Source: Rhodosorus marinus CCMP1338 (Eukaryota > Plantae > Rhodophyta). From it: 64,000 bases of DNA. The stretch spans positions 3,348,001 to 3,412,000 of the forward strand of contig JAMWBK010000002.1 in NCBI GenBank assembly GCA_029953675.1. Direction: 5' to 3'. Below the pieces are notes generated by a model. The model saw only the letters and a program-made list of their open reading frames with translations, was not told the DNA's origin and searched no databases. A program made the translations under genes and the position numbers. Every line of letters begins with the position of its first letter. Position 1 is the first letter of the stretch. This document shows positions 1,382-55,700 of this stretch, piece after piece.

Positions 1382-4300
1382 ATGGATTCGCTTTTCAATC
1401 AGAGTTTGCAGGGTCTCGTGAAAGGGATTCGATCGAACAGACGGGATGAAGAGAGCTTTCTTAGGGCCAAGTATGCGGAGTGCACAGAGGAGGCGCGAAA
1501 TCCAGATCCGCAGACGAAGGGGAATGCCCTTCTGAAGCTCACCTATGTACGGCCACCTAACACCATTCTTTGCATTTTAACTTGGGGACCATTGGTTTCT
1601 GGAAACAGCGACCTAAAGCAATGTTTTTTCATGGTTTGCTACAATGTAGTTGCAGCTGTTTGGTTTCAACTTTGGATCTTCTTCATTCGAAGTGACCGTG
1701 GTCATGAGCCGTCCGGACTTTCAGCTGAAGAGAATCGGATATTTTGCTGCAGCGCAGTCGTTCTCTCCGAGGACTGATGTTCTTCTTCTAACTACAAATC
1801 AGTTCAAAAAGGTGAGGAAAGCACGGCGCCCTATTATCGGAAAGTCTTAGTTCTTGACACGCGTGCGCGTCCTGAATACAACATCTGGAAAACTTCTTAC
1901 AGGACCTAGTTCGGGGGCGTAATGCCGACTGCTCGTTGGCGCTCTCATGCCTTGCAAAGATAAGTACAGAGGAGTTCGGCCGAGACATTGGAGAGGATGT
2001 AGTTGGCCTTTTGAACAGTTCCCGACCATACATTAGGAAAAAGGCCACCCTCGTTGCGTACAGATTGGCGATGGTGAGTCCTCATCTTTTGGACACGCTG
2101 ATTCCAAAACTACACGAGAAATTCGACGACAATGATCCATCAGTAGTATGTGCTGCAGTTACTGTCCTTTGTGAGCTCGCCGGAAGATACCCCCGCGAGG
2201 TCTTGCAGTTTAGTGCAGAGCTCTATGGGCTGTTGAGCACCTCTAGAAACAACTGGGTGAAGATCAAAGTGGTCAAGCTGATGGGAAGGTTGTGCCAAGT
2301 AGAGCCAAAGTTTGCCAAGAAGCTCGTTTCACCGATGTCCGAGTTGATACGGACCACGGAGGCAAAAGCGCTGCTCTATGAGTGCTGCAGCACGGTAACA
2401 ACTGGCATGCTAGAGTTTGATTCAATTGTCGCGGTTGTCGCGGAGAAGCTTGGCAGTTTCATTGACGAAAAGGATCAAAATCTGAAATATCTTGGACTTT
2501 CAGCCATGACGAAGCTTGCGCGAAAGCACCCGAAGGTTATAAGAGACCATCGCGATCTGATTTTGGACTGTTTCCATGATGAGGATGTATGTATAAGGCT
2601 CTGTGCACTCGACCTGATCACCAGTATGATCACGAAGAAAAACCTCAGGGAAGTTTGCAAGATGCTGTTGAAGAGTCTTGCAAGCGGTATCGAGGTACGA
2701 CTACGCATTTTAGGCGTTGTTTAGAGGATTGAGGGAGCTGCTTGTGACTCACGCCCGCTTTCTGTTTCATTTCTGGGTTCTCGCCGAAAGGCGTCAAGAG
2801 ATACAAACTCAGGTCTTGCAGCGACTGAGGACGATTTCCTGATTGCCGTTGCGAATCGGTTAATGGAAACTGGGAATCCATCCTTGGCGAGCGAAGGGAG
2901 TCCGGCCGGATTCAAGTACTTAATCACCGAGGACGATTTCTCGTGGTACATATGCTCTGTCTTGTTTGAGCTTGCGCAGCTGTCTGTAAGAGCAGTTTCA
3001 ATAGATCCCTCTCGTCGACTTCCGTACTCCATCGCCGGAAGAATTGCGAATCAGTTCGTAGAAATCCCAGCTCGAGTTGATGCTATACGGAAGGAAGCTG
3101 TGGAGAGGGCCTTGCGTATTCTCGATATTGTCAGGGACCACGATGTCACAGGCTTGAATGAGCTAGTATCTTCTGCAGCTTTCGTTGTAGGGGAGAACCC
3201 GGATATGCTTGAACTCATGGGACTTGACGAGGCCAATGTCATCACCGCGCTTCTAAACGCTGATGTAGGGAACAAATCAGGACCGCAAGCCCAGCTTCGA
3301 ATCGTCTATGCTTGCTTGAAACTTTTCGCCAGGTCGAGCCCTGTGAAGCGAGAATCGCTGAGCCTTTTAGTGGGAGAAGGCTTCTCCCCTTACCTGAATA
3401 ACCCGGATCCGGAAGTGCAGGAAAGAGCAACGGAAGTTCAGCACCTACTTAAGAGCCGACTCACTCTCTCCTCCTTGTTCAAAGGTGGGTCCTATCCAAT
3501 TCATCACCATTGCTTTCCAGCAGATTGGTCAACAGCTTCTCATGTTGTACCCCCCAACCTCAATCTTTGGATTTGATCTTGAACAGATCGCTTGAGGCCG
3601 CGAAATGGATCTGTCCAGGCACTGGTAACAGTTCCAGTTGGTCTGGATATCGACGAGCCCCTTGCAGACATCTCAGATATTGAAGAACCCACTTCTGCGG
3701 GTCTGTTTGGTGGGGGAGCCGACGGATCCGGTGGATCCCTGAAATCCAAATCTGTGGACTTGTTGGGTATGAGCCGTGGAGAAGGCGGAGAAGATTCTTC
3801 TCTATACGGAAACAGTTTAAGCGAACCTGGAGGACGAGTTGAACGGGATGAGGAAAGGCAAAATAAGGACATCTTCTACCTTGCAACGACAAAATCCCAG
3901 CCCCAAGATGTGAGCTCCCAAAACAGCTGGGCCGCACACCTCATAACCGCGAGTGGCTTAGTTATGGTTTCATGCTCTATGCCTTTGCACAGGTGATTGA
4001 GGGTATTCTACTTAACCTAGATGGTGGACAAGAGGCCGACAGTCCAAGCAAAATTGCCGAAGTTTTTTTCTCAGCTGACGAGCTGAAACCCTCGACGTTC
4101 CATAAGGAAGACTACTCCGTCTTGAAGACCCCAACGGGATCATCACTCCGAGAATCGGCACTTCGAAAAGGCGACGAGCAGCTTCCATCGTTTGACCTGC
4201 TCGACGAACCTCATATAACAGCTAAGAAGAAGACGAAGAAGAAGAAGAAGAAGAAGAAGAAGAAGAAGAAGGATGCTGAAGATTCTAAAAATCAGGATTC

Positions 4301-4743: not shown

Positions 4744-6521
4744 TTAGAAAGGCGATTGGAGGTCAAAACTAGTTGCTTCTCCTGCTTTGCTGTTAAAGTT
4801 GGCCTCCTGGTGCGCATACATTCTTCCGCGCTCTGCTTTCAGTGATCTGTCGCGGCGAGCCTTTTGCGGGACGGTAATCATCCGTTCCGGTCGGTCTCCA
4901 ATCAGGTTTGTTATAGTGAAGTCCTCGGGGCGCACGTTGGGGTTGAGATAGTGAACTGTGAAGTTCACCGGCGCCCGCAGTCCCGGAATGTACGAGCCTT
5001 CCAGACGAGCGATCTGTACCCTCTCCGTCGACACTTCCTTTAAGGACATCACGAACCTATGCTTGGATCCAGCATAGCGCCATTTTGATGCTTTGCATCT
5101 CATCTCCTCCGCCCTTCGCACGAATGTTTTCTCAACTTCCCTAACATTACTGTCAATAACCTTTTCGAGTTGGTTCGTCACCTAGTGCAAGATAAAAGCA
5201 AGCGATTGTCACATGAGCCAACGGAGTGCTAAGTTTTCAAGAGATGAGCATATCTTACATGAAGACGATTAAGGTTCGAACAGAAGGTCTCAAACAACAC
5301 TTCCATGATTAGCTCTAGCTGCTTTGCGTAGATTAATCCTAGTTCGTTGAGCATCGTCTCCTTCAGCTCCATATTCTTCCGATCGTACGCCTTCGTTCCT
5401 CGGAAGTCGCTGGCAAGGTGGCTGTATTCTTCGAGGGTATTTTCCACAAGCGCATCGGATTCCCTGCCAAAGTTGCTGTAATCGAAAAGGTGGGGTGTGT
5501 CAACATTAAGCTTAGAATCTACTGAATTGATTCACGCAAACCATGCTTACGCGATAACTCTCTCCTCGCGCTGTGCTCGATCCGACCAAGCCTTTGCCTT
5601 GAGGTTATACTGTTTATAAGCCTCCTTGTAGCTTTGGTCGCATTTGAAGTTCGCTGACACCTCTTCATCTGGCAGTGGTCTGGATTTCGCGTTCTCGGAA
5701 AGCACCCTCCAAAGTCTCGAAGCTTCCTCCGGGAATTTGGAAGCCTCCAATGCGTTCTGGAAGTCAGAGTTTTCAAAGAGGTATTCTTCCTCCATCGGGT
5801 TGACCAGCCTCGCGCGGAGAGCTGACGCTTCCGAGTCAAATTTCTCCCGGAAAAGGTTCTTATTCGAGAGAGTGACAAACTCAAACTCGAATAAATCAGT
5901 GAGGCGTGTCGCAACGTAGCCAGTGGGTCTAGATATAGTGTTCAGCGCGCTCCTGAAATCTGTCATCACCGCTGCGATTGCGTTCTGTCGTGAAATTTCT
6001 TCCTCATCGAAGTCCCGAATAACAGTCACCAGCAGCTGCTTCTTGGGCGAAATGACGCGCTCTGAACGAAGTTGGAGATTTTCCTCGACGGCTTGGAACA
6101 AATAAGAAATTCCTGAGGATTCCAATCGCCCGATGTCCCGCATATTGAATGAAACAAGCACGACATCGGCAATTGTGATCGCGAAACTTGCGGCGAGCTT
6201 TTGTGGCATTTTTCTTCCCAGATCTTTTGAATCCGCTCCTTCAACATCCAGAACCAACAATCCCCTCGGCGGAGAAGACAGAATCATCAAGTCCTTTCCT
6301 GTAACCCCTACTCCATTGATCCCGAGGGTGGTCTGAGAGCGCGAGACGCTCCCGACGGGAAAATCGCTCAAAATCAGATCGTTAAGCACCGAAGACTTTC
6401 CACTGGAACAAGGTCCAAGCGCAGAGATCACACTGAACTTCTTCGGAAGTCCTTTCATCAATCCCTTCAACCGACCCTCATTGAGCCTACCGCTCTTACT
6501 CACAACCTCGGACCAACCCAT
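4744..6521 (-). CDS. Sey1/RHD3 (atlastin-like) GTPase homolog, 3 exons, ~541 aa, no transmembrane segment seen
   Basis: Exons 6521-5551, 5475-5259 and 5181-4744 join in frame (GTAAGC/GTAAGA donors). G1 GPCSSGKS, G2 RSQTTLG, G3 DVEG and G4 VIRDF are followed by a helical stalk, as in RHD3/Sey1. Confidence 0.82.
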
Positions 6522-17142: not shown

Positions 17143-20033
17143 TCTGAATGACAAAAGAGCACACCGACTACAACAACTTCTACCTTCTCACAAAATCCCA
17201 ACCACCTTTCCACCACTTCACTACCCAACCCCCCTACCACCTCCAGAAAATCAAAAGAGTCCAGTGCTAGGCAGAGGCCGCCCCGACTCTTTCACTCCTG
17301 CTTTTATACCGCAGAAAAACAACCTAATGGCCTCCGACCAGTCAGCCCGCTGGTGCACCAGTTGCAAAATTTTAACAGTCAGTAAGGGTTCAAAGCCCAA
17401 AACATTCATTGCAGATGAAAAACATATGGAGCACGTTCTTTGGTGTGGGGAAACCAAACAACACAGGAAATTTTTCCTCTCTTTTGCATGTATGTTTCTG
17501 CTATTGTATTCTATCTATCTATCTTAGCTCACAAACCTCAATTCTCCCCTTCTGTTTTCATTGGACATAGAAACCCTGGCAGGCAATTCTCCTATATGTA
17601 AATTGTTTTTAAAAAACACTATCCAAGTCATGGAACGAGTATCCTAAAACGAAAAAAAAAAGGAGAAGAATTTTGTTTGGGGTTTTTTTCTGGCTTTCAA
17701 GAGCAATCTGGACGATTAAGATTGATTGGAAACAATGACATGTTTGTTGAATAAAAATAATGTTTTTTTGTTATCCTGATTAAGAACCTGTTTCGAATGC
17801 CCTTGGAAAGTTTAGGCTGCTTTTTTTTTTGGGGGGGGCATGGGGGAGCTTTTTGGGGGCCTGGAAGTATTGAGAATCAAAAATAAATTAGATTATTTGG
17901 GATGAATATATTCATATTGACTGGTACGAGGGGTTGGAGAGTGGGCTAATTTTGTCACTGGTTTCCTATTAGAAATGGTTTATGGGGGGGGAAGAAAGGG
18001 GGAACACACCAAAAAGTATGGTCGTTGTGACGACCTGAATGAAATCCAGTTTTCTGTTAATTTCCGATGCAATGCAGATCAAACTTTCTTTGGTTTTTCA
18101 AGTAGCTTCGAATTCGAAATTTATTTAATTTCTAGATTTTGCTTAGTGCATTCTAGCCTCAGGATTTTTTTGTGGGGGTTTCTTGTTCGTAAGAAGCCTT
18201 TTTGGTGGATGGGTTCTTTACGGAGAATACATCGTAATTTTACATGGGCGAGCTGACGTACTAAGAAGATTATGGACGAGTTGGTTCTTTTATTTCCTTT
18301 GTTTTACAGAGGATCTCTTATCGATAATATGCTTCCCTCGAACTAATTTATTGTGTCCGTCTGATAAAAGCCGTTTCAGTCAGTGCTGGATGATTGCACA
18401 GAGGTGGTTTTGGCAAGAAGTAGGACAAACTGCGCGCTCCATAAGCTGTACTAAAAGTGGAGAGCTTGGATCAACTCAAGACGATCTGTGTATGCTACCT
18501 GATCAACAATTCCACCACGCTCTTGTTTGAAATTTGGTCTCGAGGATTTTTGTGATTGTTCCACCCGCGTGTTTGCGTTCCACCCTATATCAGCTGATAT
18601 TCTCTTTGATGGCACGGCATCACGCGCGGCATCATCCTTTTTTTCTTTGCATAAACGCTTGCCTTCACTTCCATCGTCCAAGTCGGTTGTGCACGTCGCC
18701 CGATCAGCACGCTAATGCTTTGGAAGGCTTCGGTGCCGCTTTTCCTAATGATGGACAAGTTTGCTCGCCCTCGCAGATTTGGAGGATCCGGCTTTTTGTC
18801 AAAGACCCTGGCCTTCACGGTAAAACTCTCCGCGCCGGTTCTGGGGCTTCACAGGTTTCCCATGATGAGGTGGATAGCTGCGGAGTTTTCAGTGGCTTCA
18901 ACCTGAGGCACACGGAGGATGCGGGGGGGACCTTGCGACTCAGCTTAAGAGTTGCCTGGCATGGGAAGGTACTGGGTTGCAACTGGCTACTCACTACTAA
19001 ACCCTTCGTCAGCGCGCTTCACGCCTAACGCAGAGCTTGCCTTACTCAGCCCAAGAAAAGAGAAGCGTCGCCTTTCGCCCGTAGTAGTTTACCACTTTTC
19101 CGTCGCAACCTCCTTTTTTTTTTTGCGACAGGAACAAAACAAAAATAGTAGGAAACGCGCTCGCGGAATTCCTACGTGAAAGATCCAAATCGGCTAGAAT
19201 ACGTACCAAATAGTACCCATCAGGAAAAGCATGAATGCTACGCATTTACTCATCCATATGTGCAAACTTCTATTAACAAAAGCATATCCTATCCCAAATC
19301 CTATGAAAACCATTCATTTGGAATGCTTTCCACTGACTTTGCATCCACCATGCCTTCTCAGTCATTTTCTGATCACATCTAATATTTTCTTTCGAATAAT
19401 CAGAATACGAGATTCTCTTTGATTGATTCCATCGATTATCCTCCAGACTAGTTTGACCCCCTGGAATTCAGTGTCGAAGGCCACTACACATCCAGTTAAA
19501 CATTAGAAATATTTTGATTTTGCAGTTATTACTTACCAATTTTTACCTCCAGGATGAAAGACATCAGCTTAACAACCCAAAAAAAAAAAGCAGCCGAGTT
19601 TGCATGGAATCGATTGACGAGAAGTTGTTAATGGATGTTTTAATTGGGAAACATGTTTTGGATGGATTCCCAAAACGAAAAAATTTGGCTGTCAGATCGG
19701 CCTGATGGTCAGCTGACTTTACGTTTTAATGGTGAAAGAGTTGGGTGGAAGGAACGAAGGAGGTAGGTGGGTAGATGTGGGCCATGGTTGGGTTAAATTG
19801 AAAGTAGATTCATTGAGCGAAGTGCTTCTAAGTGAGAAATTGTACGCGTAGTGGAATTTTTTGATCTGCGCAAGGAACAGGTTTTTGAGAAATGGACTGG
19901 TGTGTGTGAGGAGAGTATCGATAACAATAACTAGTATCCTTCTTCGTTTTCCGAGCATGTGTAGAGTTGCATTCGTCCCTGGAACGGAATTTTTGTAGTT
20001 TTTCTTGCCTTGTTAAAGTTTGGTGGTGTTAAA

Positions 20034-21163
20034 ATGGCCAGCTTGAGTAGGAGCCCGAGAAGCTGGATGATGCTGGCGCGTCCACAGATCCATCAGAAGC
20101 GTCTGACGTCATCTAGGAGTTTTGAAGCTGGCTTGAACACTTACCGGAAGTCGACGCTGAATTTGGTGGATGATATGATTGAGTCTGGCAGCGGGTTCGT
20201 TAGCTCTAGTAGTATAGAGTCGGAACTGAACATCCTATCCGAGCGACAAGGAGCAACCCCATCCAGGCTTGGAACGTCGATGAGCATTGAGGATGGTATG
20301 AGCTCACTGAAGGGCATGAGCACTCCCGACAAATACGAGAGAAGCGCGGTAGAGGACATTCCCCTTTTGGAGTCGCTGTCACCTTCTGCTTCTCATGAGG
20401 AGATCGTCCTCGATGCAAAGCGTTGCATGCAGACTGGGGCGCTAGTCCCAGATTCAATTGTTTTCCGCTTGCTCAAGGATAGGATGTCCAAAGTAGATTG
20501 CAAGCAGCATGGATGGCTCCTTGATGGTTTTCCTAGGACGTTGCTTCAAGTAGATGCTCTCGAGGAAGCCGGTCTAGTCCCCGACGTTGTGGTATTCTTG
20601 AAGGTCTCCGATGCAGATGTACTCGACCGACTCTCATACCGCAGAAGTGACCCAAAGACGGGGAAGATTTATAACCTTAAACATAAAGCGCCGAGTTGTC
20701 CAATTGTCACGGACCGCCTCGTTCGGAGGGACGACGATTGTGAACCTGTGATTAAGTCGAGGCTGGGCAGTTTCTACAAGAGCACAGCTTCTGTACTTGC
20801 CAAGTTTCGCGAAAAGGACGTCGCAGTGCTGGACGTTGAAGCAGGTAAGACACTTCGCCCTCGGCACGAAGATGGCCGTTCGAGGATATTCTTTTCTCAC
20901 ATGGCATCTCCGTGTGAAAATCTGCAGGCAACGAATTCAGTCAGGAGGAGATTTTCCGAAAAGTGCGGGGAGCGATCATCGGACACTTCATTTCAAGACG
21001 CACAGTAGAATCTGCGTATTCAGCAAGACCGGTCAGGATTGCTTTAATGGGACCGCCTGGATGTGGGAAGGGGACTCAAGCTGAGCAGCTGCGCTCTAGC
21101 TTTGGCGTAGTACATATATCTATTGGAGACCTTCTTCGCGATATGGTCGCTAGAGGTTCATAA
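20034..21163 (+). CDS. Adenylate kinase family protein, circularly permuted, 2 exons, 348 aa
   Basis: Exons 20034-20844 and 20928-21163 (83-bp GTAAGA...CTGCAG intron). Motif order: [38 protein letters not shown], then [10 protein letters not shown] and HISIGDLLR at the C-terminus. Confidence 0.92.
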
Positions 21164-21567: not shown

Positions 21568-22781
21568 TCACTTCTTCTGTTGGAGCTCCTTTTGAGCTCC
21601 TTGCTTTGCAAACTTGCTCCGCATGGTACTGTCGGAGTAGTTTTGACCTAGTTGCTCGACCTCATTGCCGAGGTCGCCAACTGCTGCCTTGGAACCTAGC
21701 GATTCATCACAGACAACGAGTTCGTAAGGTCAGCGACAGTGCAGCTAGCAAGGGCTTACAGTGGTTCGTCCAGGGCACCAGTCTCACCGTTCTTGTCGCC
21801 AATGCCTGGCGTCAGGCTCGGCTGCGGTGCCCTGTACATCGTGTCATAGGCGTATCGGTTGAAGTCAATTGGACCAGGCATGTAGTATGCGACTGGAGAA
21901 GAGGGCATGTGATGAGAAATGGGATATGCTGTCCATTGGTTGTAAACGGGAGAAAAGTGGTGTGAGAACAGCTGCGGAGGGATTGGAACATATGCTCCCG
22001 GGCTGTATCCCATGTGCACATAAGCCTCAGCCTCGCCGGCCGCTTGCTTGTTCTCGCGCGATCTTCTGGACTCCAAACTTTGTTTCGGTTCGGCCTTCTT
22101 CACTTCCACAACCTTTCCCAGGATGTCGTGATGTGCACTACCATCGGAACTCCCAAACAGCTCAGCGATTGCCGCTTCGTCTTCAAAAGTAACAAACCCA
22201 AAACCTCGTGAGTTTCCAGTCTTGTGGTCAATCAGAACTTGTGCGTCGGCTACTTCGCCAAAGGCAGAAAAATGCTCCTCGAGCTGACCGTTTCTACAGT
22301 GGGATGGAAGGCCGCCTACGAAAATCTTCTTACTAAGCGCGGGATCTGAGGCCGGCGTAAGGTCCTTTGCAGGTCCCAAAGCTTCCTCTTCCTCTGGTAC
22401 TTGCTTTTCCGGGAAATTTATAGACTTCTTGCTAGTTGTACCGCTCGGGCTGCTTGAGACAATACTCAGATCTGACCTTGGTACTGCATGCTTGGCATCA
22501 ACCTGGCGTCCGTCAAGAACGTGCTTCGTGGTGGTTACCTTGTTCGCGTCCACAGCATTTTCATATGATACGAAACCAAACCCTCGCGGATGCTTTGTGT
22601 GCCTATCTCTCATTATGAGGCAGTCGTGCACCTTGCCAAACTGTTCAAAGTAGTTCCTCATGGACTCCTCGTCAGTCTCCCAAGACAAGCCCCCTACGAA
22701 GACCTTGAAGCTTGACCCAGCGTCCTCATCATTTATGTGGGAGATATGGGAACTGTCGTCCCCATCACTGCTCGAACTCAT
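21568..22781 (-). CDS. Two-RRM RNA-binding protein (Musashi/Hrp1/hnRNP A-like)
   Basis: RNP2 VFVGGL and IFVGGL, RNP1 RGFGFVSY and RGFGFVTF, followed by a Tyr/Pro-rich tail. A probable final intron (GTGAGA...CTAG) extends the CDS to the TGA at 21568. Confidence 0.9.
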
Positions 22782-24595
22782 CGACACCAAAGAGCTCCCC
22801 CAAGCCGCCCCAACCTCGAGATCCTTAGGACCCTCCAGGATCGCTAACTCAAGATTCTCCCTGCTAAGATTCAACCCTGCCAAAGCCCGCCACAAGCCTC
22901 AAAAATTCAAGCAGTTCTCGCACGGAACTTCCCCAAGAAGCCTTACTCTCTTCAGCACGTACCGATTTCCCTCTACTCCTTTCTGAAGCTATATACCAGA
23001 AAACCCTCCTTACTCTACAACTCCAAAGAGATACGCCTCCTTCTCGAAACAATCCGAATTTGATATCGACTGGATACAGACAATCGTTTCCAAAGCTCTC
23101 AACGCCCAACTTAGATACCCTCTCCTCATAGCATGGCACCTTGCTCCTTTTTCTCCAGGCTCAAAAACTCATCACCAACGATGCAAATCAGCTCCCCTTC
23201 TCACTGAGCCATCTAAATTTCCATTTCGGGGGAAAAAAACTAAACGGGGTCAGCATGAAATGATTAGCTATTGAAAGAAAAAAGAAGCTTGCCATGATGA
23301 AAGTACAAGAAAACAATATCATCGCAAAGTTTTCTCCAAAAAAAATCACTGAATAGCTTTCTTCTAGTGGAAATATTTACCCATACACCAGATAATTCTA
23401 CAGATAAAAGGATAGAATCTTTAACCAAAATACTTAAAACGGACTCGCTTTCGTATCCATCCGCTCGGAAACGGATCATTCTGCAATGAAAAGTTGTCAA
23501 AAAATATCAAAACATATCATTCCTACCGAGCCACAATCTCAGTGGGGGTAGATCCAACCTCTTCCGAAAGAATGTTCTGATCGAGCATGAATTGAGACAT
23601 GATCATTCACAGCTGCACAAAAACAAAGGATATTTAGATATAGTTCCCCAAATAATAGAACAAAACTTTTTAGTTCGTATTTTTAACTATTTTCATGAAG
23701 ATTTACGGTGTCGGGATTTCATTTAGATGGACGGAAAATCTGCGAAAATATTTGTGTTTTTCTGTAGTACGGTTTGGCCCACCAAGCCCGGCTGATGAAG
23801 GCGGTTATTTGACTAGGTGCCAATCAATTTCAGTTAACCCTGTCCACCAAATTGGCTGCCAGTGGACCGGTGGAACACAAACTCCCTAAGTCTTTGAAAA
23901 ACGATAATACGCTAACCAATAATAAACGTACACAAGAAAACGAATGTCCAATTAAATCACCGTACGTTAACAATTTCGGATATGTTTTTTGATTTTTGGG
24001 AAAGTTCATTGGCCAAAGAACCATGTTGATTCTCTTTATTTCTGAATTTTTCAAGAGTACGAAAGCTTCCCCCTTTTTTTTTACCTGCTTTTAACAGTTT
24101 GGCAGATTTTTCCAAGACGAATCGGGCCATTTGTCTTTTTAGTCAGCGGATGCAGTCGCAATGTCGTCTGCCCCGCTTTAGGCTTTTAGCCCGCGCGTAC
24201 TCAAACAATACCTTCCCAATTTTTTTTCACTTTTTTTTCTTTCTCTCTCTTGCTTGCGCGTGTTTTCATGCGTCTGGCTTTTGAGTGTATATTATCTTTA
24301 GAACGAGAGCGGAACTCATACTGGTGCGGATAGAGTGTTATGGGAGCCGAGCAGCACTCAAACATCTCAAGAAACAGTCACTAGGAGTGAGCTAACTTTT
24401 GTTGGCGAATGAATAGTTTGCTACGGGCTTGGAATTTCCACGCTGCCCCCTTCAAGATATGGTTTATTTTTATTTCACTGGACCACAAAACAATTTATTC
24501 GCGATGCTGTGCGATCTCAGCGGGCAGCTGGTTAAGGGACAGCGCGGTTTGTACTGTCGTGGGGGCAATCTGCAAGACCCTTTCCGGTAGACCTG

Positions 24596-32840: not shown

Positions 32841-35825
32841 ATGCTAGGCGGGAGGTTTTCAAAGTTCAAGGAGCGAGCTAGTGAGCTCTACCAAGTAGCT
32901 TTGGAGACTGCGGCAGCTGAGGAGGAGAATGAGAAGTGTGAAGCTGAGCTCGCTAGGAAGAAGGCGGCTGAGGTGTTTGGAAGAGGAACGGAGAATGTCA
33001 CTCAGGAGAGCGGGCTTGAGAGGGACGAGGGGCTCCACCGGAGCGCCGACGAGATTGATTCTGATGTCGTTGTACATTCTCCAGTGGATTCAGATAGACT
33101 TACTGTGGTTTCCCTGACTGGCGGGAGCGATTCGGAGTTGCTTCGGAAAAGAGTTGAACGACTAGAGTCTGAGCTGGCGTTGAAAGCTGACGAACTTCTG
33201 GAGGTTGAGAAGAAGCTGAAAAGGGCAGAACAAAATGGCATTAACTCCAACAGAATTCCTACTTCAAAAGATCCGGATGGAAACTTGCAAGCGATGCAAG
33301 CGCTCCTCAGCCAAAAAGAGTCCGAGCTCCACATGCTAGACGTGGAGAGAAAAAACTTCAAAAGGGAGGTCAATTCACTTGAGAAGCTCGTCGAATCGAA
33401 GGACAAGGAGGTAAAAGCTGCGAGAAGCGATCTTGAAGAACTCACCGATGAGTTCGTGGGTATGCAGAACAAGCTTGAAGACGCCGAAGCCAGGCTGCTG
33501 AGAGCAGGTGGGGCTCTGTCCGACCAGTCATCGCCCCCTCAGTTTTTGAGCGGGGCTGAGCTCAGCCCTCGACTGGCCTCACTCCAGAAGGAAGTTCGTA
33601 TTTTGGAGAAGGAGCGGGACGATGCCAAAGAACGAGCATCGAAGGCTTCAGAGCTTGCGCAAATAACGTCCGAAGAATCTGACTCAATATTGAAGGAGAG
33701 GGATGTTGCCCTAGCAAAGCTCCGAGAGGCGCAGATCCGAGCTGAGGAGTCGTACGTGATTGCTGAAAATGCGAGGGAGGGCCTTTTGCAGGCTGAGAAA
33801 CTCATTGAAGAGAAAACCCAGGAGGTTGAGCTCGCCCAAGCGGCGTTGAAATCAGTACAAAGCGGAGTTATCCCTGGAGAGGAGTCCCGCGCAGTAGATG
33901 AAAATTCTCTCATGGAGAAAGAGGCCGAAATTCAGGATCTCCATAGAAAACTCGGCGAAGCCGAAGGCAAAATTGAAACGCTGAGCAACGACAAGAAAGA
34001 CGTAACGGCATACCTTCAAACTGCGAGAAGGGACCGTGACAGAATAGCAAACGAACTGGAAGTTACACAAGCCCAAATTGAAGATTTTGGGACTGAGTTG
34101 AGAGGACGAGAGAGTGAAATAGGCAAGCACAAGATGCTTATCGAGGAAATTCAACAGGAGAAAAATCATTTGATGCAGAAAGAAGCAGAGTTGATGGATC
34201 AGGTTTCCTCGTTGAGGGCAGCCGCAGAGGAGCTTGAAGCGACCAAAGCTCGCGCTTCGAAGTCAGAAGAAAGGCTGAAAGCTGACCTCGAAAGCTCGTA
34301 TGAGGAGGTAGAAAGGGTCAAGCAAAACCTTTTGGAGAGCTCAACAAGGGCTGGGGTCCAGCTGCGTGAGCTTGAATCATCGGGTCGAGAGAACTTGGAG
34401 CTCAAGGATGAGCTGCTAAAGCTGAAGATGAGTGGCAAAGACATGACAAGGCGGTTGGAGGAGGAGATTGCTTCAGCGGCGGAGGCGGAAGAGAAGGTCA
34501 AAACTCAGTCGCGGATGGTTGAATCATCCGCGCAGGAGATAAAGGAGCTCAAGGAACAAATAATCAAGCTGAGGAGCGAAGTCGAGGACTTGGGGAAGAG
34601 ATTACAAGCAGAAACTTCGATTTCAGATCAGCTAAAGGATAAGCTGTATAATTCGGATCAAGAGCTTGCGGAAGCATCGCTGGAATTGCAGAGAATGCGG
34701 GCCCAGATGTCGGAGGGCGCCGACGCGAAGGCGGAGGAGGAACGCCTACTGAAGGAGCTGGAATCATCTAAAGCTATGGTGAGCGCCCTGGAGAATCAGG
34801 CAACCGAAAGTCTCGCTGATTCTCAAAGGGCAGCGGGGGATCTTGAAATGGAAAAGAGCATGGCAGCGGAGTTGGAGCTCCAGCTGAAGACTGCTAGGGA
34901 CCAAATTCTCGACCTCGGCAAGGAGCTAGAAATCGCAAGAAGTAGGACGGATAGCAAGAGCGCAGATCTTGTAGCCAAGCTGCGGAATGATCTAGAAACT
35001 GAGAAGAAAATCGCCGAAGCGAAACATTTGGCCCTAGCGCGTGCAATGGACGACGTACTTGAGCTAAAGAATCAGCTCGAGCGTGGAGGATCAATTTCAC
35101 AAGAGCAATCCGGTGAGATGAACAACGAAGCCAGTCAAGATGAGAGCGAAAGATTAGCTGCAGAATTAGAAGTGGAACGTCAACGGAGCGAGCAACTCGC
35201 GATTGAAGTAGAATCGAGGAAGTCGGAACTCTTGGAAGTGGGATTAGAGCTCAACAACAGTAGGACTGCCCGCAACGTACTAGATGACAAGCTTCACGAA
35301 GCTGAGAGTAGATTCTCGGCACTGGTGCTCGAGTCCGAAAAGCAAACTGCGGCAGTTGCTGCGTCCAGAGCAGAACGGGACTCGCACATATCTGCCCTTC
35401 AACAGCAAATCCAAGAGCTCGAAGGACATCTGTTAGATGAACGAGAACGGCGTGATGTTCTCCGGGAAGGGCCAGGAGAAACTGAACAAGATCGAGTCGC
35501 AGATCTTAACCTTCGACTGGAAGAGGCAGACCATTCTCGAAAGCGAATGGAAGCAAGAATCCAATTTTTGGGGGAGGAGCTCCATCGGACCCAGGCGACA
35601 CTAGATCAAGAGAGAGTAAGGGGAGATGAGAACGAGTTGGCTGCGGCTAGAGCTCGACGCTCGCTTCAGGAGAACGTCGTGGTTACTCCATCGCCTAGGC
35701 GAGCAACATCTACGCCGGATGATAGCAAGAGCTTGACCCTTGGCCAGATGCTACGCAGGCTCGTGCAGGAGGATCGAGGAAGCAACGTGGATGAAGAATC
35801 CCTAGTTTTTGAGAGGTTAATTTGA
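32841..35825 (+). CDS. Intronless 994-aa coiled-coil protein, golgin-like; family not recognised
   Basis: Single long ORF, E/K/L/A-rich with heptad character. No transmembrane or GRIP motif seen. Confidence 0.8.
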   Translation: MLGGRFSKFKERASELYQVALETAAAEEENEKCEAELARKKAAEVFGRGTENVTQESGLERDEGLHRSADEIDSDVVVHSPVDSDRLTVVSLTGGSDSELLRKRVERLESELALKADELLEVEKKLKRAEQNGINSNRIPTSKDPDGNLQAMQALLSQKESELHMLDVERKNFKREVNSLEKLVESKDKEVKAARSDLEELTDEFVGMQNKLEDAEARLLRAGGALSDQSSPPQFLSGAELSPRLASLQKEVRILEKERDDAKERASKASELAQITSEESDSILKERDVALAKLREAQIRAEESYVIAENAREGLLQAEKLIEEKTQEVELAQAALKSVQSGVIPGEESRAVDENSLMEKEAEIQDLHRKLGEAEGKIETLSNDKKDVTAYLQTARRDRDRIANELEVTQAQIEDFGTELRGRESEIGKHKMLIEEIQQEKNHLMQKEAELMDQVSSLRAAAEELEATKARASKSEERLKADLESSYEEVERVKQNLLESSTRAGVQLRELESSGRENLELKDELLKLKMSGKDMTRRLEEEIASAAEAEEKVKTQSRMVESSAQEIKELKEQIIKLRSEVEDLGKRLQAETSISDQLKDKLYNSDQELAEASLELQRMRAQMSEGADAKAEEERLLKELESSKAMVSALENQATESLADSQRAAGDLEMEKSMAAELELQLKTARDQILDLGKELEIARSRTDSKSADLVAKLRNDLETEKKIAEAKHLALARAMDDVLELKNQLERGGSISQEQSGEMNNEASQDESERLAAELEVERQRSEQLAIEVESRKSELLEVGLELNNSRTARNVLDDKLHEAESRFSALVLESEKQTAAVAASRAERDSHISALQQQIQELEGHLLDERERRDVLREGPGETEQDRVADLNLRLEEADHSRKRMEARIQFLGEELHRTQATLDQERVRGDENELAAARARRSLQENVVVTPSPRRATSTPDDSKSLTLGQMLRRLVQEDRGSNVDEESLVFERLI

Positions 35826-37000: not shown

Positions 37001-40000
37001 TTACTCTCGTTCTGGGGTTGGCGCAAGCCGCTCACCGTTAGATTGTACGGATTCCGCGACTGTCTCGGATGTTCCATTGCCCAGTGCACGGTTCTGCTTC
37101 CCTTTCGATGCCTTCGATTCTCTGGAAAACCTGGAGCCATTCCGCTGATTTTTAGCTATCCCATCAGAGGCCCCAAACGAGGAGCTTTCTTCTGCTCTTG
37201 GACTCGAATTGAAAGGGAAGGTGGAGGTTCCAGAATTTGTTGGATTCGGTGCCGTTGCACTGGAATTACTCCCACTAGAGCGCTTGCCGTTTGGAGATGG
37301 TTCCGCGGTAGCTGCTCTGTTGCTGTTGCCCCGCACAATCTGCATTCCAATGTAGAGTACGTCCCGTAGCATCCGCGCGAATAAACGCGAAACGATGTTG
37401 GCGATAATTATTCCGGTGTACAAGAGGATAAGCGGCGTTAGGCGCAATATCGTCGGTACGTTGAGCCGGAGCAGCTTTCTGAGTAGCTGCAGCAACCTTT
37501 TTCGGTTCTCCTTCAGTTTGATCATGTAGACTGCGTCGGTACATGCTCCAATACACCTTGCGGGAGGTCTCAGCCTAGACGGCAGGACCATAGATTCAAT
37601 CCCATCCAGCACTCTGGTCACAATGATTTAAAAAGCGCTCGGAGGTGAGCACTTGCACTCCAGGAGTTCGTGTCCCTGATCATCGAGATCGGAAGAGCTT
37701 ACCTTTGAAATCTGAAATTAAGGTCATCCAAAAGCTGTGACTTCAGCATTTGTCGAAACTGTCTGCCACCAGGAGACGTTATGAAGTCCACGACCGTGTG
37801 GGGTTTGGATATGGTGTTGATCGGCGTCCCTACGCCTTCATCTTCAAGTATGTGCACATCCTCGTCAGCATCATTGACCATGTCCGTCAGCCGGTTCCAT
37901 CGAATGGATCCCTCCCGGTCAACAACCATTTCGGTCAACGCCGCCTTCAAGGTCGGGTTTTCTCCGTACAGAACTCTGTTGACCACGTAAGGATATATCA
38001 GGCGGAAAATACGAAAATCAGGGTCCGCAGTGAGGGCTAAGCCTTCTAGAGTGGCCAAGGCCCTCATGTTACTGACAAAGTACGAAGGTAGTACTAGTGG
38101 AAATTGGTTCGCGAGGGAAAGCAGCTTTTCGGTGATACCGATAAACGTGAAATTCTGGGTCCCTCCACTAACAAGCGGCTCAAACTCGTCCATCAGCGCT
38201 TTGGAGAACTCTGCGAGTTCCAAATCCATTTCGTACGCCTGGATGATCGACATACTTGCGAAGTCCTCGGCGAGAAGTTCGTATTCCCTGTTGATCAGAT
38301 GCAGGATCGTAATTAGGAAGGAATCCCGGACGTTGTCCGGTATCGTTGACATCAGTCCAAAATCGAGATACGCCAGCTGGCCATCTTGGGTCCGAATGAG
38401 ATTGCCAGCGTGGGGATCCGCATGCAGGAAACCAACGTCCAGCATCTGCGTCAGACAGCAGCGAATTCCCGCCTCGACTAGGGGAACATCTTGAAGCTTG
38501 ACCGAAGCACTGTCGGTGATCAATCGCTGCCCCTCAACCCACTCCATCGTAAGCACATGCGCTGTCGAGTACTTGGTGAACACCTTGCAATTCCACCAAG
38601 CCAAAGAAAAAGGCTAAACAATCCTTCCTCACACGTTTGGACAGACAACTCGGCCCTACCTTTGGAACGTAGATTCCCTTAATATTTCCATAAAGGAGTT
38701 TGAATTGGGCCATATTCTTGCTTTCGCGGACATAGTCAAGCTCCTCGAATAGTCGAAGTCCGAAATCGTCAACTAGCAAAGCAGGATCCGATTTACTCCT
38801 CGTGTACGTCCGAACAAGCTTGGCCATGGCACGAAGTAGGAAAAAGTCAAGTGCAATTACATCGGCCATGCCCGGTCGCTGCACCTTCACAGCTATTGGG
38901 ACTCCTTCGAGTTCCGCTTTGTACACCTTATCGGGGGGGACGAATTACGAATTCACACGTCAACCTCACTAGATCGCTCGTCTTATTGTGAGGCTCCACC
39001 ACGGTCGTTACTGCATAGGCTCGTACTGAGGCAAGAAAATAAAATCCCTACCTGGCCCAAGCTCGCTGCGCAAATTGGCGTCTTGGTGAGGTTTTGAAAT
39101 ATTCGGTCTGGATCAGCTCCCAACTCCTCTCGAACGAACTGAAAGGCTGCATCATTTCCGAAGAATGGTATATCGTCTTGCAGCCGCTGAAACTCTCTCA
39201 TCAGTCGCGGGCCAACGATATCTGGACGGCTCGCAAGAAGTTGTCCAAACTTAACGAAAGCAGGACCCAGCCTACTAAGTGCGGTTCGCATCATTGCAGC
39301 GCGTCTTTGATACCTCCAGTCCCAGTACTCCTTTTCCTTCCTAAGCCTTTCTTCCAAGGTTTCTCGTTGTTGTACCTTATGGGTGCAATGCGTTGGTTAG
39401 TGTGAGCTGCTTTGTCTATGAAGCGCGGACTTGTCAAATGGTAAAATCTGCAAAGAAGTTTGAAATGATACTTACAGGCAGCTGGATTCCAACTTTTCGC
39501 ATAACCTTTCTCGCTCTGTGTTGATAAGCCCTTAGATCCTTCGACAAATTGAAGTTGAAATTGTCCCAGAAAGCCCCGACGCCTAGTTGAAGTGCTTCGA
39601 ACCCAATTTGAAATGATCGGAAGGCGACCTGAAGCAAATGGTATACGAAGTTAGTTTGAGTATTCTAGGCTTGGCCGAAAAGGTATGGATCAAGAGATAA
39701 GATTGACTCAACAACAGATTCTATAAAGCAGAAACTTCTTCTCGGGAGCGAAGAGGAGTAGAATACCGTTTCTGGGCGCAGCTTGAAGTACTGTTCTATT
39801 TTCTCCGGGTCATATATCGTTGGTAGCTTCACTTTTCCCGATACACGGTCCGACCATCGGTTGGCGAAGATCACGTACAGGGCGACGAACGTCCCAACAC
39901 CAAGGCGACGGAAGAAAAACGTGATTTCGTCAACTTCTCTGACTGCCCAGTCCTCGTCATAAATGGCTTCCTTATAGGCTTCCTCATCAACCTTTATCTG

Positions 40001-49744: not shown

Positions 49745-52700
49745 ATGAATGTCTTGTCGGGCGCTTTGAATTACATTGCCGGCAATGACCGAGTTGAAGG
49801 GATTAGTCCTGTGCGCAGGCTCGTTGAAAGGATAAAAACTAGCTCGCTCCCTCAAGATCGCAGAAAGTCAATCAGGGATTTGAACAGAGCTGTACAAGAG
49901 GTGTGCTTGCGGCTTTTCGTTTCTTGTAGCAGTTTCAGTACGTTCGCACTGTTTCTGATAAGTCTGTTTCACCGCACAAACAGGGCCCACATCGGCAGGA
50001 GGAAATCGGATCTGATGGACTCAGAGTTATTTTCGCTGTCTTGGAGCAGGACAGGCAGATGCAAGACACAATTGTGGCCTCCTTGGAACTCCTGAACAAT
50101 GCTTGCTGTGCTCTAGACCCGTGAGCAAATCCCGAAATGCTGTGATTAGACGTGAATGCCTTGCGTGAACTTTCTGAGTTCGCTCATGATCAATAATTCT
50201 TACTTGAAAATGGCTCTAGTCCTACGTCGGCGGAGGAGGACGAAAACCTTGATACGTCAGAGTTTAAGCGAAGGTCTGCGGCAGCAGCGAGCAGAAACAC
50301 TCAGCTTTTTGCAAGGATTAATAACGCAGTGTCATTACTAATAGAGCTTCTCGAAGAGGAGGAGTTTTATGTGCGCTTCAACACGGTGGAGTTGCTAACT
50401 GCCATGGTTGGCAATGAAACGGATCTGCTCGTGTCGGAAATACTTGCGTCCTCGATGGGATTGTCACGTCTCGTGGACCTCCTCAACGATTCAAGGGACG
50501 TAATAAGAAACGAAGGGCTGCTGCTGCTAATTGCATTGTCAGGGAACAGTGAGGAGCTCTCGAAGATCCTCACGTTCGAAAGTGTTTTCGACAAGCTCTT
50601 CTCGATAATCAATACGGTCAAGGCACCTGTGGATCGCTCGGAGGAGGACCTGGTTGATGCAAAAGAGGGTGCGATCCTCGTGCACGACTGTCTGCATTTG
50701 ATTCAGAACATTTTGCGACATAGTGGAAGCAACGTGGCGTTATTTCGGGAGGCAGAGGGCATTGAGAAGATTGCGAAACTGATACGGATCGTAGACGTGA
50801 CAATGAGAACGATAGTAGCTGAGGACGTTGACAACCTGGTCGCTGCCATTGATATTGTCAGCCTCTTGTGTGACGGCGCTGATTCAGATGCAGGAGCCAA
50901 CCGATCCTCTTGCGCCGGTGCAGGAATCGTGGAGAGACTGTGGGACGTGCTTGACGATCGGAGCTCTTCAGTACACGTCAAAGCGTCAACTGTCAACTGT
51001 TTGGCCCTGGTGGTACGGAAAACTCAAGCTGGTATGAGCAGGCTCTTGGGGCGGTCCAGGAACCCCTACCAGTTCGTGCTCGATGAGTTATATAGTAGCG
51101 AATCGGCCGGGATGCGAGGAGCTTGCTGTCTGCTAGCCTGGGAGCTCATTGCAGACAGAAACGGGAGCACTCGGGGGGATTTTATGAATTCCGTGTTCTC
51201 CGATACTAGCGATGGAAACCCCTCCCTAGTGGAAATGTCTAGCCGGATCAAGGCTGCCGCTGTTAGCTCACCTAGTGACGACGTAGATGCTGCCAGTGTT
51301 TTTTATTCGTGCACTCTTCTTAGCTGGGCAGTCCAGAGGAGCAAAGCGCCCAAACTCTCGAGAACCCAGCTGCTTTCCGCCACTGCGGGTTCGAAGCGCG
51401 AGAACTTGCTCACCAAAAGCGTTCGCTCCCTGAGTAGAGCGTCAGTAGAGGGCTCTGCACCCGAAGTTCGCGTTGGCATTCTGCGTTTGCTTTGTACTTG
51501 GCTTCACAACTCCAACGATGCAATGTCTGAATTCCAGTCCTCCGTCATGCATCTGCCGCTTCTCGTGGAGTTGATGACCAGGGAAAGTGTTCGTGGTGAT
51601 ACTGCCGAAGTGTATATTCGAGGACTAGCGGCCGTTATTATTGCCAGTGGCTTACTGCTTGGTGACCAGCAACCGAACATTAAGTCAACGCTTGCTGATA
51701 TTGTTAGGAAGAGGATCGGGGTTGCGGCGTTCACAGCGAGGTATAGTGATTCGCTCAACTTGATGCTGTTCTTTCTAGCCTGTCGCGCTGGGTTGCTTGA
51801 GTGGCTGAGATTCGAACTTTGGTCCCGCAAGGTACCGTGTATAGCTCTTCGAGTCCGGTTCTAATATCCACGTTCGTGAATTTTTCGTTTCCTGTACTTT
51901 TCTGCCTTACCATGGCTAGGCTGGATGACTTGCTAGCTTCAGAAGCTTTTACCAGCGCTCAATCCGGGGAGCTGATACTGGAGGATCCTCTGAGACTTTT
52001 AAAGCTGGAGCAGCAGAAGGGTCCGCGGAGTGGGAAAGGCTTGTGCGGGTACTCGAAGTACTTCGACCCGGACTTCACTAAGCTTGTTGGGGAGGTCTAT
52101 GAGAAATCGCGGTCAACCATGATGGAGCTAATGATTGATGCTGAGGGGTCGACACTGCCTCAAGCTCCCAGTTTCGATAGGCCGCCTTCACTCAACGTAA
52201 ACGGTGGAGGCGATGAGGAGATTATACTACACTACAAGGAGATAATCAGAAGCCAGGATGCAGCCCTAGCAGAATCTAGGGAGGAAGGGGAGCTGCTAAA
52301 ACAGTCGTTGAACAGTTTGCAAGCCGACGTGGACAACAATATGCACTTCGTTCAGGATGGTTGCGTGAAGAACAGGAGTGGGGCAGAAGACGATGAGCAA
52401 ATGCTAGCTAGGTCTGAAAAGATTGCCGCGCTAGAACGTGCTCTGCAAACGAAAGGCCAAGAAATGGAAGCTCTGGCCGGTGCCTACTCGCAGCTGGAAG
52501 AGGAGCTGGTGAGTGGAGCAAGCGCCCGTACACCGTCAGCGAGCTACGACTCTCGCGCAGATGAGCTGAATAAACTCGTAGAAGCGGAGAAGCGCAATGC
52601 CTTTAAGCTTGAAACTCGGCTGATGCAACTGGAGCTATCTGAGAAGACCGCAAAGGCCGAGGCTGAAGCTTTCAGAGGACAGCTGAAGGAGCTCAGTGCT

Positions 52701-55700
52701 CGAATAAATTCGACAACAGACGGGAGCATCTCACAGAACGATGTCGAGGTATTGGAAGAAAGAAAAAGGCGGGAGATTGCGGAGGAGAAACTGAATTTTA
52801 TTGAGGAACAGGGAGAGGCCAGGGAGACGTCTGAGCGCGAGCTCAAGGAGAGAGTTTTGGAAGCAGAGCGCATGTTGGCTGAAGCAACGTCCAAGACTAG
52901 CCGATTGCAGAACAAGGTGCAATCTCAAGAGCACGATATTGAAACCCTTAAAACGAAACATATGCGGGAAGTTGAACTGTCCAGGGCAGCGAGCGTAACG
53001 CTAGAGACAAGTCTACAAGAAGAGATTGCAAGACTCGAGCAAGAACTGGCCGAAGCGGAGAGCAAAGACTCTGAGCGCGAAATACAAAAGCTGCAAGAAG
53101 AAAAGGATGAGCTCGGAGAGGATATTGTCAGATTCACAGCCCAGATAGCAGGCTTGAAATCCGAATCGGAGGACCTTAGGACAAGGAGGAGAAACTTAGA
53201 ACAAGAACTTGACGAAGTTTCAACAGCTCATTTGGAACTCAAAACACAGTTTGAACAGGTCAACAAGGAGCACGTGCGGGAAAGCGCAGAAAACCAGCGT
53301 CTGGCATCACTCGTTCGCGAGCTGCAGGACTCCGAGGCCGCTGCTCAGAAAGACCTCACTTTGAAGTCGGAAGAGGTTAACGGGAAGGAGGAAAAGTTGC
53401 GGACTCTGCAGTCCAGGATTGCGGAGTTGGAATCGACAACCAAAGCGGTTGAAAAGGCGCTCGCAGGCTCTAAAACAGACTCAGCGGACCTCACCGATCA
53501 GATTGTCAGACTCAGCGAGCGTCTGGTGGCTACTGAGGACTCGCGCCAAGGGCTTGAGAGGGAGCTCCAGCTCGCCCAAGAGGATATCACTCGCCTGAAG
53601 GAAATAAAACCACCTCCAGATAGCACAGATCCCCACGTTGTTGCGAGCAGCTCTGTCCCTGACGCATCTGAGGTGTCGGACCTTCGAGCGATGCTCGCAG
53701 GTACCCAGGAGGCACTTCGGGAAGCAGAGAACGACATAGAGGTACTGAGAGCAAAGGATACCGATGCACGGGAAGTCGTAGCGCGTGAAATGGAGCTCAG
53801 AGATATCCTGGATAGGTCAAGGGAACGCTATGAGCTAACAGAAAAGCGTTGTGCAGACCTGGAGGCCGAAATAGAAGATTCCCGCGAGCAGCACTCCGCC
53901 GCAAGCTTGGCCATGCAATCGAGATTACAGGAACAGGACTTAGAGCTGAAAATGGCGCTCTCGCAGGTTGAAACCGAAAGGCAACTTAGACTGGAAGGAG
54001 AGCGCAAGCTGGATGAGTGCGCTGATGACCAACATACCTCGAGCATTATGGAAACATCCAGCAGAATACCAGAGCTTGAGTCCGAAGTTGCGAATTTGAG
54101 TACTAAGCTCACCAAGTTTGAAGAGGATAGGCTCATGCTCGCCTCCCAGGTAGACAGGCTGGAGTCGCAGCTCTCTATGCAGACTGCAAGTATTCGAGAT
54201 GTTCTGATTGAGCTAAACGTTTCGACGTCGGAGATTGAATCAGATAGGGCAACAGTCGACACGTATGAAGAGGAAGCTATTGCCCAGCTGGAAGAGATTC
54301 AGAAGGCCTTGAAAGGTCTCCGCGAAGATCGCGATTCGGCCGAGAAAAAGTCCCGTCTTCTAGAGGGAAGGAACTCAGAGCTCATTGAGGCTCTAGCGCG
54401 CAGCGAAGAAGTGGCACAAGATCAGACTCTGAAACTAGACGATTACCGTTTAAAGACCGAGGAACTGGAAGGTCACCTGCGAGACGAGCGAGAAAGTCGT
54501 TCCCTTACTGAAGATGAAATTCAGCAGAAAGAGAAAGATCTGGCCATGTTCAAAGAAAGAGTGGTTTCAGCGGAGCTCCAGATCAAAGTGCTCGAGTCGA
54601 CCGTGCAGGAGAACGAAGAAATGATGGAGAAGCTTGATCAAGAGCTTACCGTTGCGAACAAATGCGCTGAGGAGGCCGAGGAGCGGGTGAAAAAGTTGGT
54701 AGAGAAAGAGGATAGCTCATCCAAAGCTCTGCAGAAGGGGAAAGCTGCGCTGGAGTCTGATCTAGAGGCTCTAGAGTCGCAGCTTCGTGGGGAACGGAAG
54801 GAGAAAGCTGCGCTGGAGTCTGATCTAGAGGCTCTAGAGTCGCAGCTTCGTGGGGAACGGAAGGAGAACGCTGCGCTGGAGTCTGATCGAGCGGCTCTAG
54901 AGTCGCAGCTTCGTGTGGAACAGAAGGAGAAAGCTGCGTTGGAGTCTGATCAAGCGGCTCTAGAGTCGCAGCTTCGTAGGGAACAGAAGGAGAAAGCGGC
55001 ACTAGAGTCTGATCGAGAGGCTCTAGAGTCGCAGCTTCGTGGGGAGTTGGATATCTTGCAGTCCGAGAGATCAGCGCTCGAAAACCAACTCGAAAAGCAG
55101 AACCAAGTGCTCGAGGTAGCAGAGGTGCGCAGTTCCGAGAGAGTGGAGAAAGTCAAATTGTTGGAGGACCAACTAAACGAGACCAGATCAGAAATTGTCC
55201 AACTGCGGGACTTGAAATCGACAATATCCGACCAAGAATCTGAAAATTCCCGAATCTCGAAACTGCTCGATGAAGTTACGAGTGAGATGCGAGATCTTGA
55301 AGCTGACCTGGAGACTCTGAGATCCGAAAACACGGAGAAAGCGGAAGCGTTAGTTCTTCTGACCACAGCCAAAGAAACAGCTGAGAAGGCCGCTCTGAAC
55401 GCAATGGCCGCGTGGCGTTCGGCTGCGGCTGTGCCTGAAGGCCTGAAAGCGGACGAAGGAATCACTATAGATTTCGTCGTGAACAGCTTAATTGAAGAGC
55501 TGAAGACAAGCGCAGATCGGAACGCGGAGTTTCGGCGTGAGAAGGAGGAGGCTGACCTTGTGGTGAGTCATTGGATGGACGAGATTGAAAAGCTCGAGTC
55601 GAAGACGTTGAGGATGGAAGCTTCCGCGCAAGATTGGCATCAAGAGAAAGAAGCTTTGCAGGAATCTGTTCGTCGTCTTGAAGGTGTCTGCCGCGAGCTG

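Follow-up and report, generated by a model that had tools for sequence, protein, structure and literature searches.

The gene NDN08_008356 of Rhodosorus marinus encodes a protein that sequence comparison supports as a natural circular permutant of the long-type adenylate kinase (AK), in which the segment that normally opens the enzyme, including the P-loop, has moved to the C-terminus. The gene lies at positions 20034-21163 of a 64,000-nt stretch of contig JAMWBK010000002.1 (assembly GCA_029953675.1), hereafter called the window, whose own numbering is used throughout; since it is placed on this R. marinus contig, the window is nuclear DNA of a unicellular red alga. We consider it likely that the product is an active AK whose chain order is naturally permuted; this order is conserved across red algae, and the new N-terminus bears a conserved disordered arm.

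The segment order was determined with a reference profile of 217 positions built from 80 canonical single-domain AKs. Residues 122-286 of the protein matched positions 43-211 of this profile (E-value 2.6e-40, 126 bits), and residues 307-347 matched positions 2-42 (E-value 2e-17, 52 bits). The break fell at profile positions 42|43, with neither a gap nor an overlap between the two AK pieces. Positions 43-211 come before positions 2-42, and the canonical N-to-C order, in which the P-loop comes first, is therefore not that of NDN08_008356. An earlier note, made from the sequence alone, had foreseen two profile matches in swapped order and a clean break between the equivalents of E. coli S43 and E44, between the helices of the nucleoside monophosphate (NMP)-binding domain; both expectations were borne out. 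When the chain was de-permuted in silico, by joining residues 306-348 to residues 121-300, a single contiguous match over positions 2-211 was obtained (193 bits). In the Pfam ADK profile (PF00406), for which the gathering score is 26.8, residues 123-262 covered positions 40-150 and the score was 122.3 bits; the P-loop piece (308-347), for its part, fitted generic P-loop kinase profiles (AAA_17) over their first 37 positions only. With E. coli AK (1ake), chain residues 43-184 paired with residues 122-260 of the query. The sole P-loop motif, GPPGCGK, is at residue 312, and the N-terminal part has none, as the same note had stated.

On the DNA, the larger AK piece (20397..20974, plus strand, interrupted by an intron) encodes residues 122-286 and comprises helix 3 of the NMP domain, the core, the LID and the C-terminal helix; it bears R168, Q172, R199, R203, R232, D234, D235 and R243. 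It is followed by a linker (20975..21034, plus strand; residues 287-306) that lies between the profile matches and connects the former C-terminal helix with the former N-terminal strand, beta-1. The linker had been put at about 14 residues, a figure that our analysis replaces by about 20 residues between the profile matches, or 10-13 from the last predicted helix to beta-1. The smaller AK piece (21035..21160, plus strand; residues 307-348) corresponds to canonical positions 2-42 plus one residue and supplies beta-1, the P-loop, helix 1, beta-2 and helix 2 of the NMP domain. It contains the P-loop GPPGCGKGT (21050-21076, plus strand; residues 312-320) and, in NMP-domain helix 2, the codon of R341 (21137-21139, plus strand), the equivalent of E. 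coli R36. The TAA stop comes 7 residues past R341. A tblastn search of the window with canonical and tandem AKs detected no further AK-like sequence beyond 20400-20810 and 21023-21160. Because the search yielded just these two pieces, the window offers neither a P-loop exon upstream nor a second domain downstream, two of the findings that the earlier note had named as able to overturn its reading. The gene is also not a mere fragment of a tandem repeat, given that no AK sequence lies upstream or downstream and that the start methionine and the N-terminus are conserved.

The gene model comprises two plus-strand exons that give 1047 nt in frame after splicing and a protein of 348 residues. Exon 1 (20034..20844) contains codons 1-270 and the first base of codon 271, and its start methionine opens the sequence MASLSRS; exon 2 (20928..21163) includes the TAA stop at 21161-21163. 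The intron between them (20845..20927, plus strand; GTAAGA...CTGCAG, of the GT..AG type) is 83 nt long, is in phase 1 and lies inside the Gly271 codon. Intron, length and stop codon had all been proposed beforehand, and the resulting product matched the NCBI model 'hypothetical protein NDN08_008356 [Rhodosorus marinus]' at 100%. Homology to orthologues without the intron runs unbroken over the 20844/20928 junction. Without splicing, the frame closes at a stop codon (21006-21008) and its product lacks the P-loop. An intron-retaining message (20010-21008, plus strand) would give a product of 332 residues that ends ahead of the P-loop, so that intron retention would yield a kinase-dead form.

At least 15 distinct proteins have the swapped order; their sources are Rhodosorus, Purpureofilum, Compsopogon, four Galdieria species and further samples. 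They were collected by a first homology search, a profile search over 1.84 billion representative proteins and a further pair of searches. The first search returned four full-length relatives (P0004, P0006, P0008 and P0009; 38-43% identity, 98-99% coverage), all with the swapped order, a MASL(S/G)R start and a stop 6-9 residues beyond the GDLLR motif. The N-terminus MASL(S/G)R(S/T) is common to these four and to P0151. Two of the relatives come from Logan assemblies (P0004 and P0006), one is a transcript of Purpureofilum apyrenoidigerum (P0008) and one is an MMETSP transcript marked complete (P0009). Other members are P0151/P0336 (MMETSP), P0171 from Compsopogon caeruleus (MMETSP0312), P0039, P0271, P0272 and P0339 from Galdieria phlegrea, sulphuraria, partita and yellowstonensis, and P0045, P0230, P0344 and P0345. 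Among 453 fetched AK homologues scanned with the canonical profile, this family was the only one in which the swapped order is followed by nothing else; the two other swapped-order matches were fragments of tandem proteins. Several orthologues are complete transcripts, which demonstrates expression in relatives, and all four orthologue contigs that could be read carry an in-frame stop upstream of the ATG and 114-625 nt past the stop without AK similarity. The orthologues that the earlier note had called for are thus present in at least three red-algal classes.

Gene structure and gene order are also shared within the family. The contig of P0004 (L001) contains an in-frame 93-nt GTAAG..ATAG intron at the same Gly codon and in the same phase as the intron of the window, and the apparent 31-residue insert of P0004 arises because this intron was left in frame. 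In the window, a gene for an RNA-binding protein with two RNA recognition motifs (RRMs; 21756-22895, minus strand) converges on the AK gene, its 3′ end just 590 nt beyond the AK stop. The contig of P0336 (L007) likewise has a convergent RRM-protein gene (1769-3052, minus strand) whose product is 48% identical to that of the window. The AK-RRM gene pair is a conserved microsynteny between distant relatives.

Identity to the window protein ranged from 30 to 48% among 13 aligned members, and the Galdieria and Rhodosorus permutants share 30-32% overall. Permuted AKs occur in Stylonematophyceae, Compsopogonophyceae and Cyanidiophyceae, a span that, together with the established red-algal phylogeny, puts the rearrangement close to the base of the phylum; Galdieria and Rhodosorus separated about a billion years ago. 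A search with a 10-sequence family profile missed members of its own query set (P0008, P0009, P0151, P0171 and P0230) and is no complete census, so that absence from Bangiophyceae and Florideophyceae cannot be claimed. The Galdieria permutants (P0039, P0045, P0271, P0272 and P0339) have, past the NMP helix, a conserved C-terminal tail of about 55 residues with the pattern TDLRSVG..FGR...C.H(E/D)TSF..S.LP. The Rhodosorus-like permutants fall into subgroup a (P0001, P0004, P0151) and subgroup b (P0006, P0008, P0009, P0345), and each of two samples, SRR22824290 (L001/L002) and JGI 3300016877 (L004/L007), holds one member per subgroup. Finding both subgroups within a single sample points to a pair of paralogous permuted AKs in each organism. 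In R. marinus itself, we saw no member of subgroup b.

The catalytic residues listed in the earlier note were all found at their expected places. The equivalents of E. coli K13, R36, R88, Q92 and R119 are K318, R341, R168, Q172 and R199, and those of R123, R156, D158, D159 and R167 are R203, R232, D234, D235 and R243. The P-loop GPPGCGKGT, with K318, was invariant in all 13 aligned permuted members, as were the equivalents of K13, R88, Q92, R119, R123, R156, D158, D159 and R167; the R36 equivalent was kept in 12 of the 13. With all residues for phosphoryl transfer and nucleotide binding retained, the most likely function is the ordinary AK reaction. The cysteine of the P-loop (GPPGCGK) was considered as a hallmark of the family and discarded: it is invariant in the permutants, yet a cysteine is also present in 36 of about 167 other AK domains.

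These data bear on another possible reading, in which a tandem AK has decayed and left this protein as a remnant: a pseudogene, or else a non-catalytic pseudo-enzyme retained, for example, as a scaffold or nucleotide sensor. The activity of the permutant is a prediction, one orthologue lacks R36 as assembled, and a disordered arm of such length and conservation points to interactions other than catalytic ones, all of which would suit such a remnant. We nevertheless judge it improbable, since open frames and all catalytic and substrate-binding residues have been kept between Galdieria and Rhodosorus at 30-32% identity, the pattern expected of an active enzyme under selection, and since engineered AKs permuted at the same site are active.

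Structure prediction was carried out twice with AlphaFold2, in one run with a 29-sequence alignment of five permutants and tandem AKs, the latter being colinear over the junction, and in the other with only 13 permuted proteins aligned. Both runs gave a predicted local distance difference test (pLDDT) score above 90 for approximately residues 120-348, with 93-97 for the C-terminal strand, the P-loop and the helices, and predicted template modelling (pTM) scores of 0.64-0.66 over the two runs, even though a third of the chain is disordered; in the 29-sequence run, these C-terminal elements reached 95-97 and pTM was 0.66. The predicted helix 121-134 corresponds to NMP helix 3 and is followed by the core, the LID and a long C-terminal helix (276-294); then come a strand (307-311), a helix (318-329), a strand (332-335) and a helix (336-346) equivalent to NMP helix 2. 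In these models, the secondary structure follows that of AK exactly. A Foldseek comparison of the predicted fold with the PDB ranked AKs best, with maize AK (1zak) at an E-value of 1.6e-10 and a TM-score of 0.65 on the target. No solved structure of a permuted AK was found by sequence search.

On this evidence, the chain would start with a disordered extension of about 115 residues, enter the fold at the second helix of the NMP domain, and continue through the core, the LID and the C-terminal helix. A linker of about 10-20 residues would then lead on to beta-1, the P-loop, helix 1, beta-2 and the first NMP-domain helix, to end at the equivalent of E. coli S43. Such a protein would catalyse the ordinary reaction, ATP + AMP <-> 2 ADP, in an ordinary fold whose AMP-binding domain is assembled from both chain ends.

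The P-loop segment might instead complete the core of another chain, making the protein an obligate domain-swapped oligomer whose active unit is a dimer or a chain. The linker that carries this segment is flexible and poorly conserved, its sequence and length differing among orthologues and its pLDDT falling to 67-75, and it could permit swapping; the AlphaFold2 models, moreover, cover the monomer only. We rate obligate swapping slightly below the remnant, as the monomer model is confident for both pieces and the engineered permutants described below, with a linker of 3 residues, were reported active with no mention of obligate swapping. That the gene model or the assembly is wrong, and that a normal or tandem AK with a missed P-loop exon or second domain, or a misassembly near 20850-21050, has been misread, is hardly credible: the P-loop does hinge on the removal of one predicted intron, and the exact product is without a Rhodosorus transcript on record, but the 64 kb hold no other AK-like sequence and the convergent RRM gene leaves a mere 590 nt after the stop. 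The same order, moreover, recurs in independent genomes and transcriptomes of at least eight organisms, with in-frame stops ahead of the ATG; L001 has its intron at the same position, and the NCBI annotation agrees.

Several observations weigh against an active, conserved permuted AK and have to be set beside the above. No transcript of this gene is on record for Rhodosorus, where the exact protein was found only in the genome assembly. Catalytic activity of the red-algal proteins is predicted from their residues, and full activity should not be assumed by analogy, given that the engineered cp45 permutants are less stable and bind substrates more weakly. Foldseek aligned about 175 columns, from the larger piece (44-214) only, as is expected from a sequential aligner, and that the C-terminal strand closes the sheet is predicted from pLDDT and pTM, not from inspected contacts. 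In a tree of de-permuted domains, the single clade of permutants received a bootstrap of just 28/100 and had no stable sister group. Finally, the orthologue P0151/P0336 (L007) has no R36 equivalent as assembled.

The reading frame of that orthologue (L007 58-1230) reads HISTGDLLVKISADERPKNKENL at its end as assembled, and a GTGAAA donor stands after GDLL, which suggests that an intron may have been retained at this point. We looked for an intron whose removal would restore R36, and no acceptor gave an in-frame arginine.

As to the origin of the permutation, the top-scoring non-permuted relatives are tandem multi-AK proteins, and the permutant is colinear with the end of one domain, the linker and the start of the next domain of such proteins. 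This colinearity is what a model of duplication and trimming would predict, and makes that model plausible without proving it. Most plausibly, the permutation would have a single origin, in which an AK gene was duplicated in tandem or fused and then lost its outer parts. No red-algal tandem AK intermediate was identified. The de-permuted domains were 42-47% identical to AK domains of either kind, single or tandem; they were monophyletic in the neighbour-joining tree, and identity and tree together resolved no special affinity of the permutant to tandem AKs. A better case for a single origin than the tree is offered by the break point, the N-terminal motifs and the intron, all of which are shared.

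The extension ahead of the fold (20034..20393, plus strand; residues 1-120) consists of a basic Ser/Arg-rich leader and a Ser-rich region predicted to be disordered, with pLDDT below 50 for residues 1-110 or 1-117 in the two runs. It had been taken for a passive addition of about 120 residues, a view that its conservation and its repeated motifs contradict. The leader, of about 30 residues, has no acidic residue until E31 and looks like an organelle-targeting peptide. R6, R16, S27, S29 and S60 are conserved, and every member with a full N-terminus has two or three copies of the motif SxS[FYIM][DE]xG[LM] after the leader. A motif scan located three copies in the window protein, all on the plus strand: SSRSFEAGL (20109..20135, residues 26-34), which aligns with orthologue copies including STSLDEGL, SSSSIESEL (20202..20228, residues 57-65) and TSMSIEDGM (20274..20300, residues 81-89), with the core SMSIEDGM. 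Elsewhere in the family the motif takes the forms SRSYDSGL and SMEDGL, and, in Galdieria, STSLDEGL and SQSFEGGL. With acidic residues around them, its serines resemble sites of phosphorylation or binding.

A tentative explanation, to which we give rather low odds, is that the permutation is no neutral accident but has been kept since it frees the tip of the mobile AMP-binding domain for a regulatory arm that controls closure or product release, and thus activity or location. This arm would be the conserved disordered extension with its two or three Ser-rich acidic motifs, it could act through phosphorylation or partner binding, and the result would be a switchable AK with no counterpart among canonical AKs.

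The extension was also considered as the relic of a first AK copy, after MAFFT had set SxDDGLxxxLKG under the 'YGVVHISTGD' of tandem AKs; this was rejected, as the motif is a two- to threefold repeat. In shuffle tests, no profile signal was present ahead of helix 3 in the Rhodosorus, Purpureofilum and Compsopogon proteins, P0004 and P0151 (110-262 of 300 shuffles scored equally). In Galdieria, the sequence 'KLSYDETLRSNLN' ahead of helix 3 weakly resembles canonical HISTGDLLRAAV and scored about +2 bits against profile positions 28-42, with 4-18 of 300 shuffles equal, among Galdieria sequences that are not independent of one another. It may, as a hint only, be a relic of the beta-2/helix-2 segment of the first copy.

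Compared with canonical long-type AKs (PF00406; maize chloroplast AK 1ZAK, E. coli AK 1AKE), the permutant belongs to the same family and has the same P-loop, NMP-binding domain, LID, catalytic residues and predicted fold; once de-permuted, its sequence is 42-47% identical to eukaryotic AK domains. In contrast to them, its first 42 residues come after its last, its AMP-binding domain is made from two termini, and an arm of about 115 residues has been added. Tandem AKs (AK8, AK9, Chlamydomonas FAP42, Guillardia theta P0270 and bacterial two-domain AKs) are colinear with the permutant and represent the expected intermediate form, but hold complete domains, whereas the permutant amounts to exactly one domain's worth of sequence, ending 5-9 residues past R36 in the Rhodosorus group.

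The closest parallels are engineered permutants of AK, which are well studied. The AMP-binding domain was the region most tolerant of new termini in three AK homologues (10.1101/840603; 10.1101/2023.10.25.564053). The cp45 AKs made by Silberg, Atkinson and co-workers (see also PMC6061844) have their new termini in the same loop, central in this domain, as the red-algal proteins, and their old termini are likewise joined by a short linker; they fold, bind the inhibitor Ap5A and are active. Bacillus and Geobacillus cp45 enzymes retain cellular function and in vitro activity, with lower stability and weaker binding (10.1101/840603; 10.1101/2023.10.25.564053). These enzymes were made in the laboratory, have a linker of 3 residues and lack an extension, whereas the red-algal permutants are natural, old and conserved between classes, with a linker of 10-20 residues and a conserved N-terminal arm. 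A natural counterpart of cp45 goes unmentioned in the papers on engineered permutants (10.1101/840603; 10.1101/2023.10.25.564053).

Natural permutation of the P-loop fold is known for GTPases (PMC2430557). The circularly permuted GTPases YlqF/YawG/RsgA/YqeH and cpRAS are likewise natural, conserved and functional permutations of P-loop NTPases (PMC2430557); they differ in belonging to the TRAFAC class and not to the kinase-type AK fold, in their break point and in their role in ribosome assembly, and have no homology to the permutant beyond the P-loop fold. A precedent for regulatory tails on algal AKs is the CP12-like disordered tail of Chlamydomonas ADK3 (PMC9406205). This enzyme is, like the permutant, an algal AK with a conserved disordered extension, which in ADK3 serves partner binding and regulation (PMC9406205). 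The ADK3 tail, however, is C-terminal, has the motif CxxxPxxxxC and belongs to an AK of canonical order, whereas the extension of the permutant is N-terminal and carries another motif.

In the full-text literature, we found no report of natural permutation among NMP kinases and no prior description of a natural permuted AK, in line with the earlier note, whose author knew of none. The novelty is in recognising the rearrangement and its conservation; the sequences themselves were already public as 'adenylate kinase' or 'hypothetical protein', and the lesson for annotation is that pipelines blind to domain order hide such a rearrangement.

Adenylate kinase is a standard model for domain motion that limits enzyme turnover. 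A natural family permuted in the very loop that laboratory work predicted to be tolerant would show that evolution has used the same solution, and would add a natural permutation to the NMP-kinase branch of the P-loop fold, beside the permuted GTPases. The permutants would be ready-made proteins for comparing dynamics, stability and regulation with canonical AKs of the same organisms, and, if the regulatory arm proved real, a natural test of the AMP-binding domain as the permutation-tolerant part. The surprise would be for the fields of AK dynamics and protein topology; the chemistry is expected to be ordinary.

The tRNA and Rfam scans detected no tRNA genes and no Rfam families in the 64 kb. 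A GTPase domain of RHD3/Sey1 type (5547-6521, minus strand) and an ABC1 atypical kinase domain (37699-38604, minus strand) are ordinary eukaryotic neighbours in the window. Two uninterrupted plus-strand open reading frames, of 994 codons (32841-35825) and 2486 codons (51801-59261), gave no Pfam match at E <= 1e-5. The longer one comes directly after a frame with a Uso1/p115 head domain (50329-51864), with an overlap of 64 nt, and may encode the coiled-coil portion of that same tethering protein.

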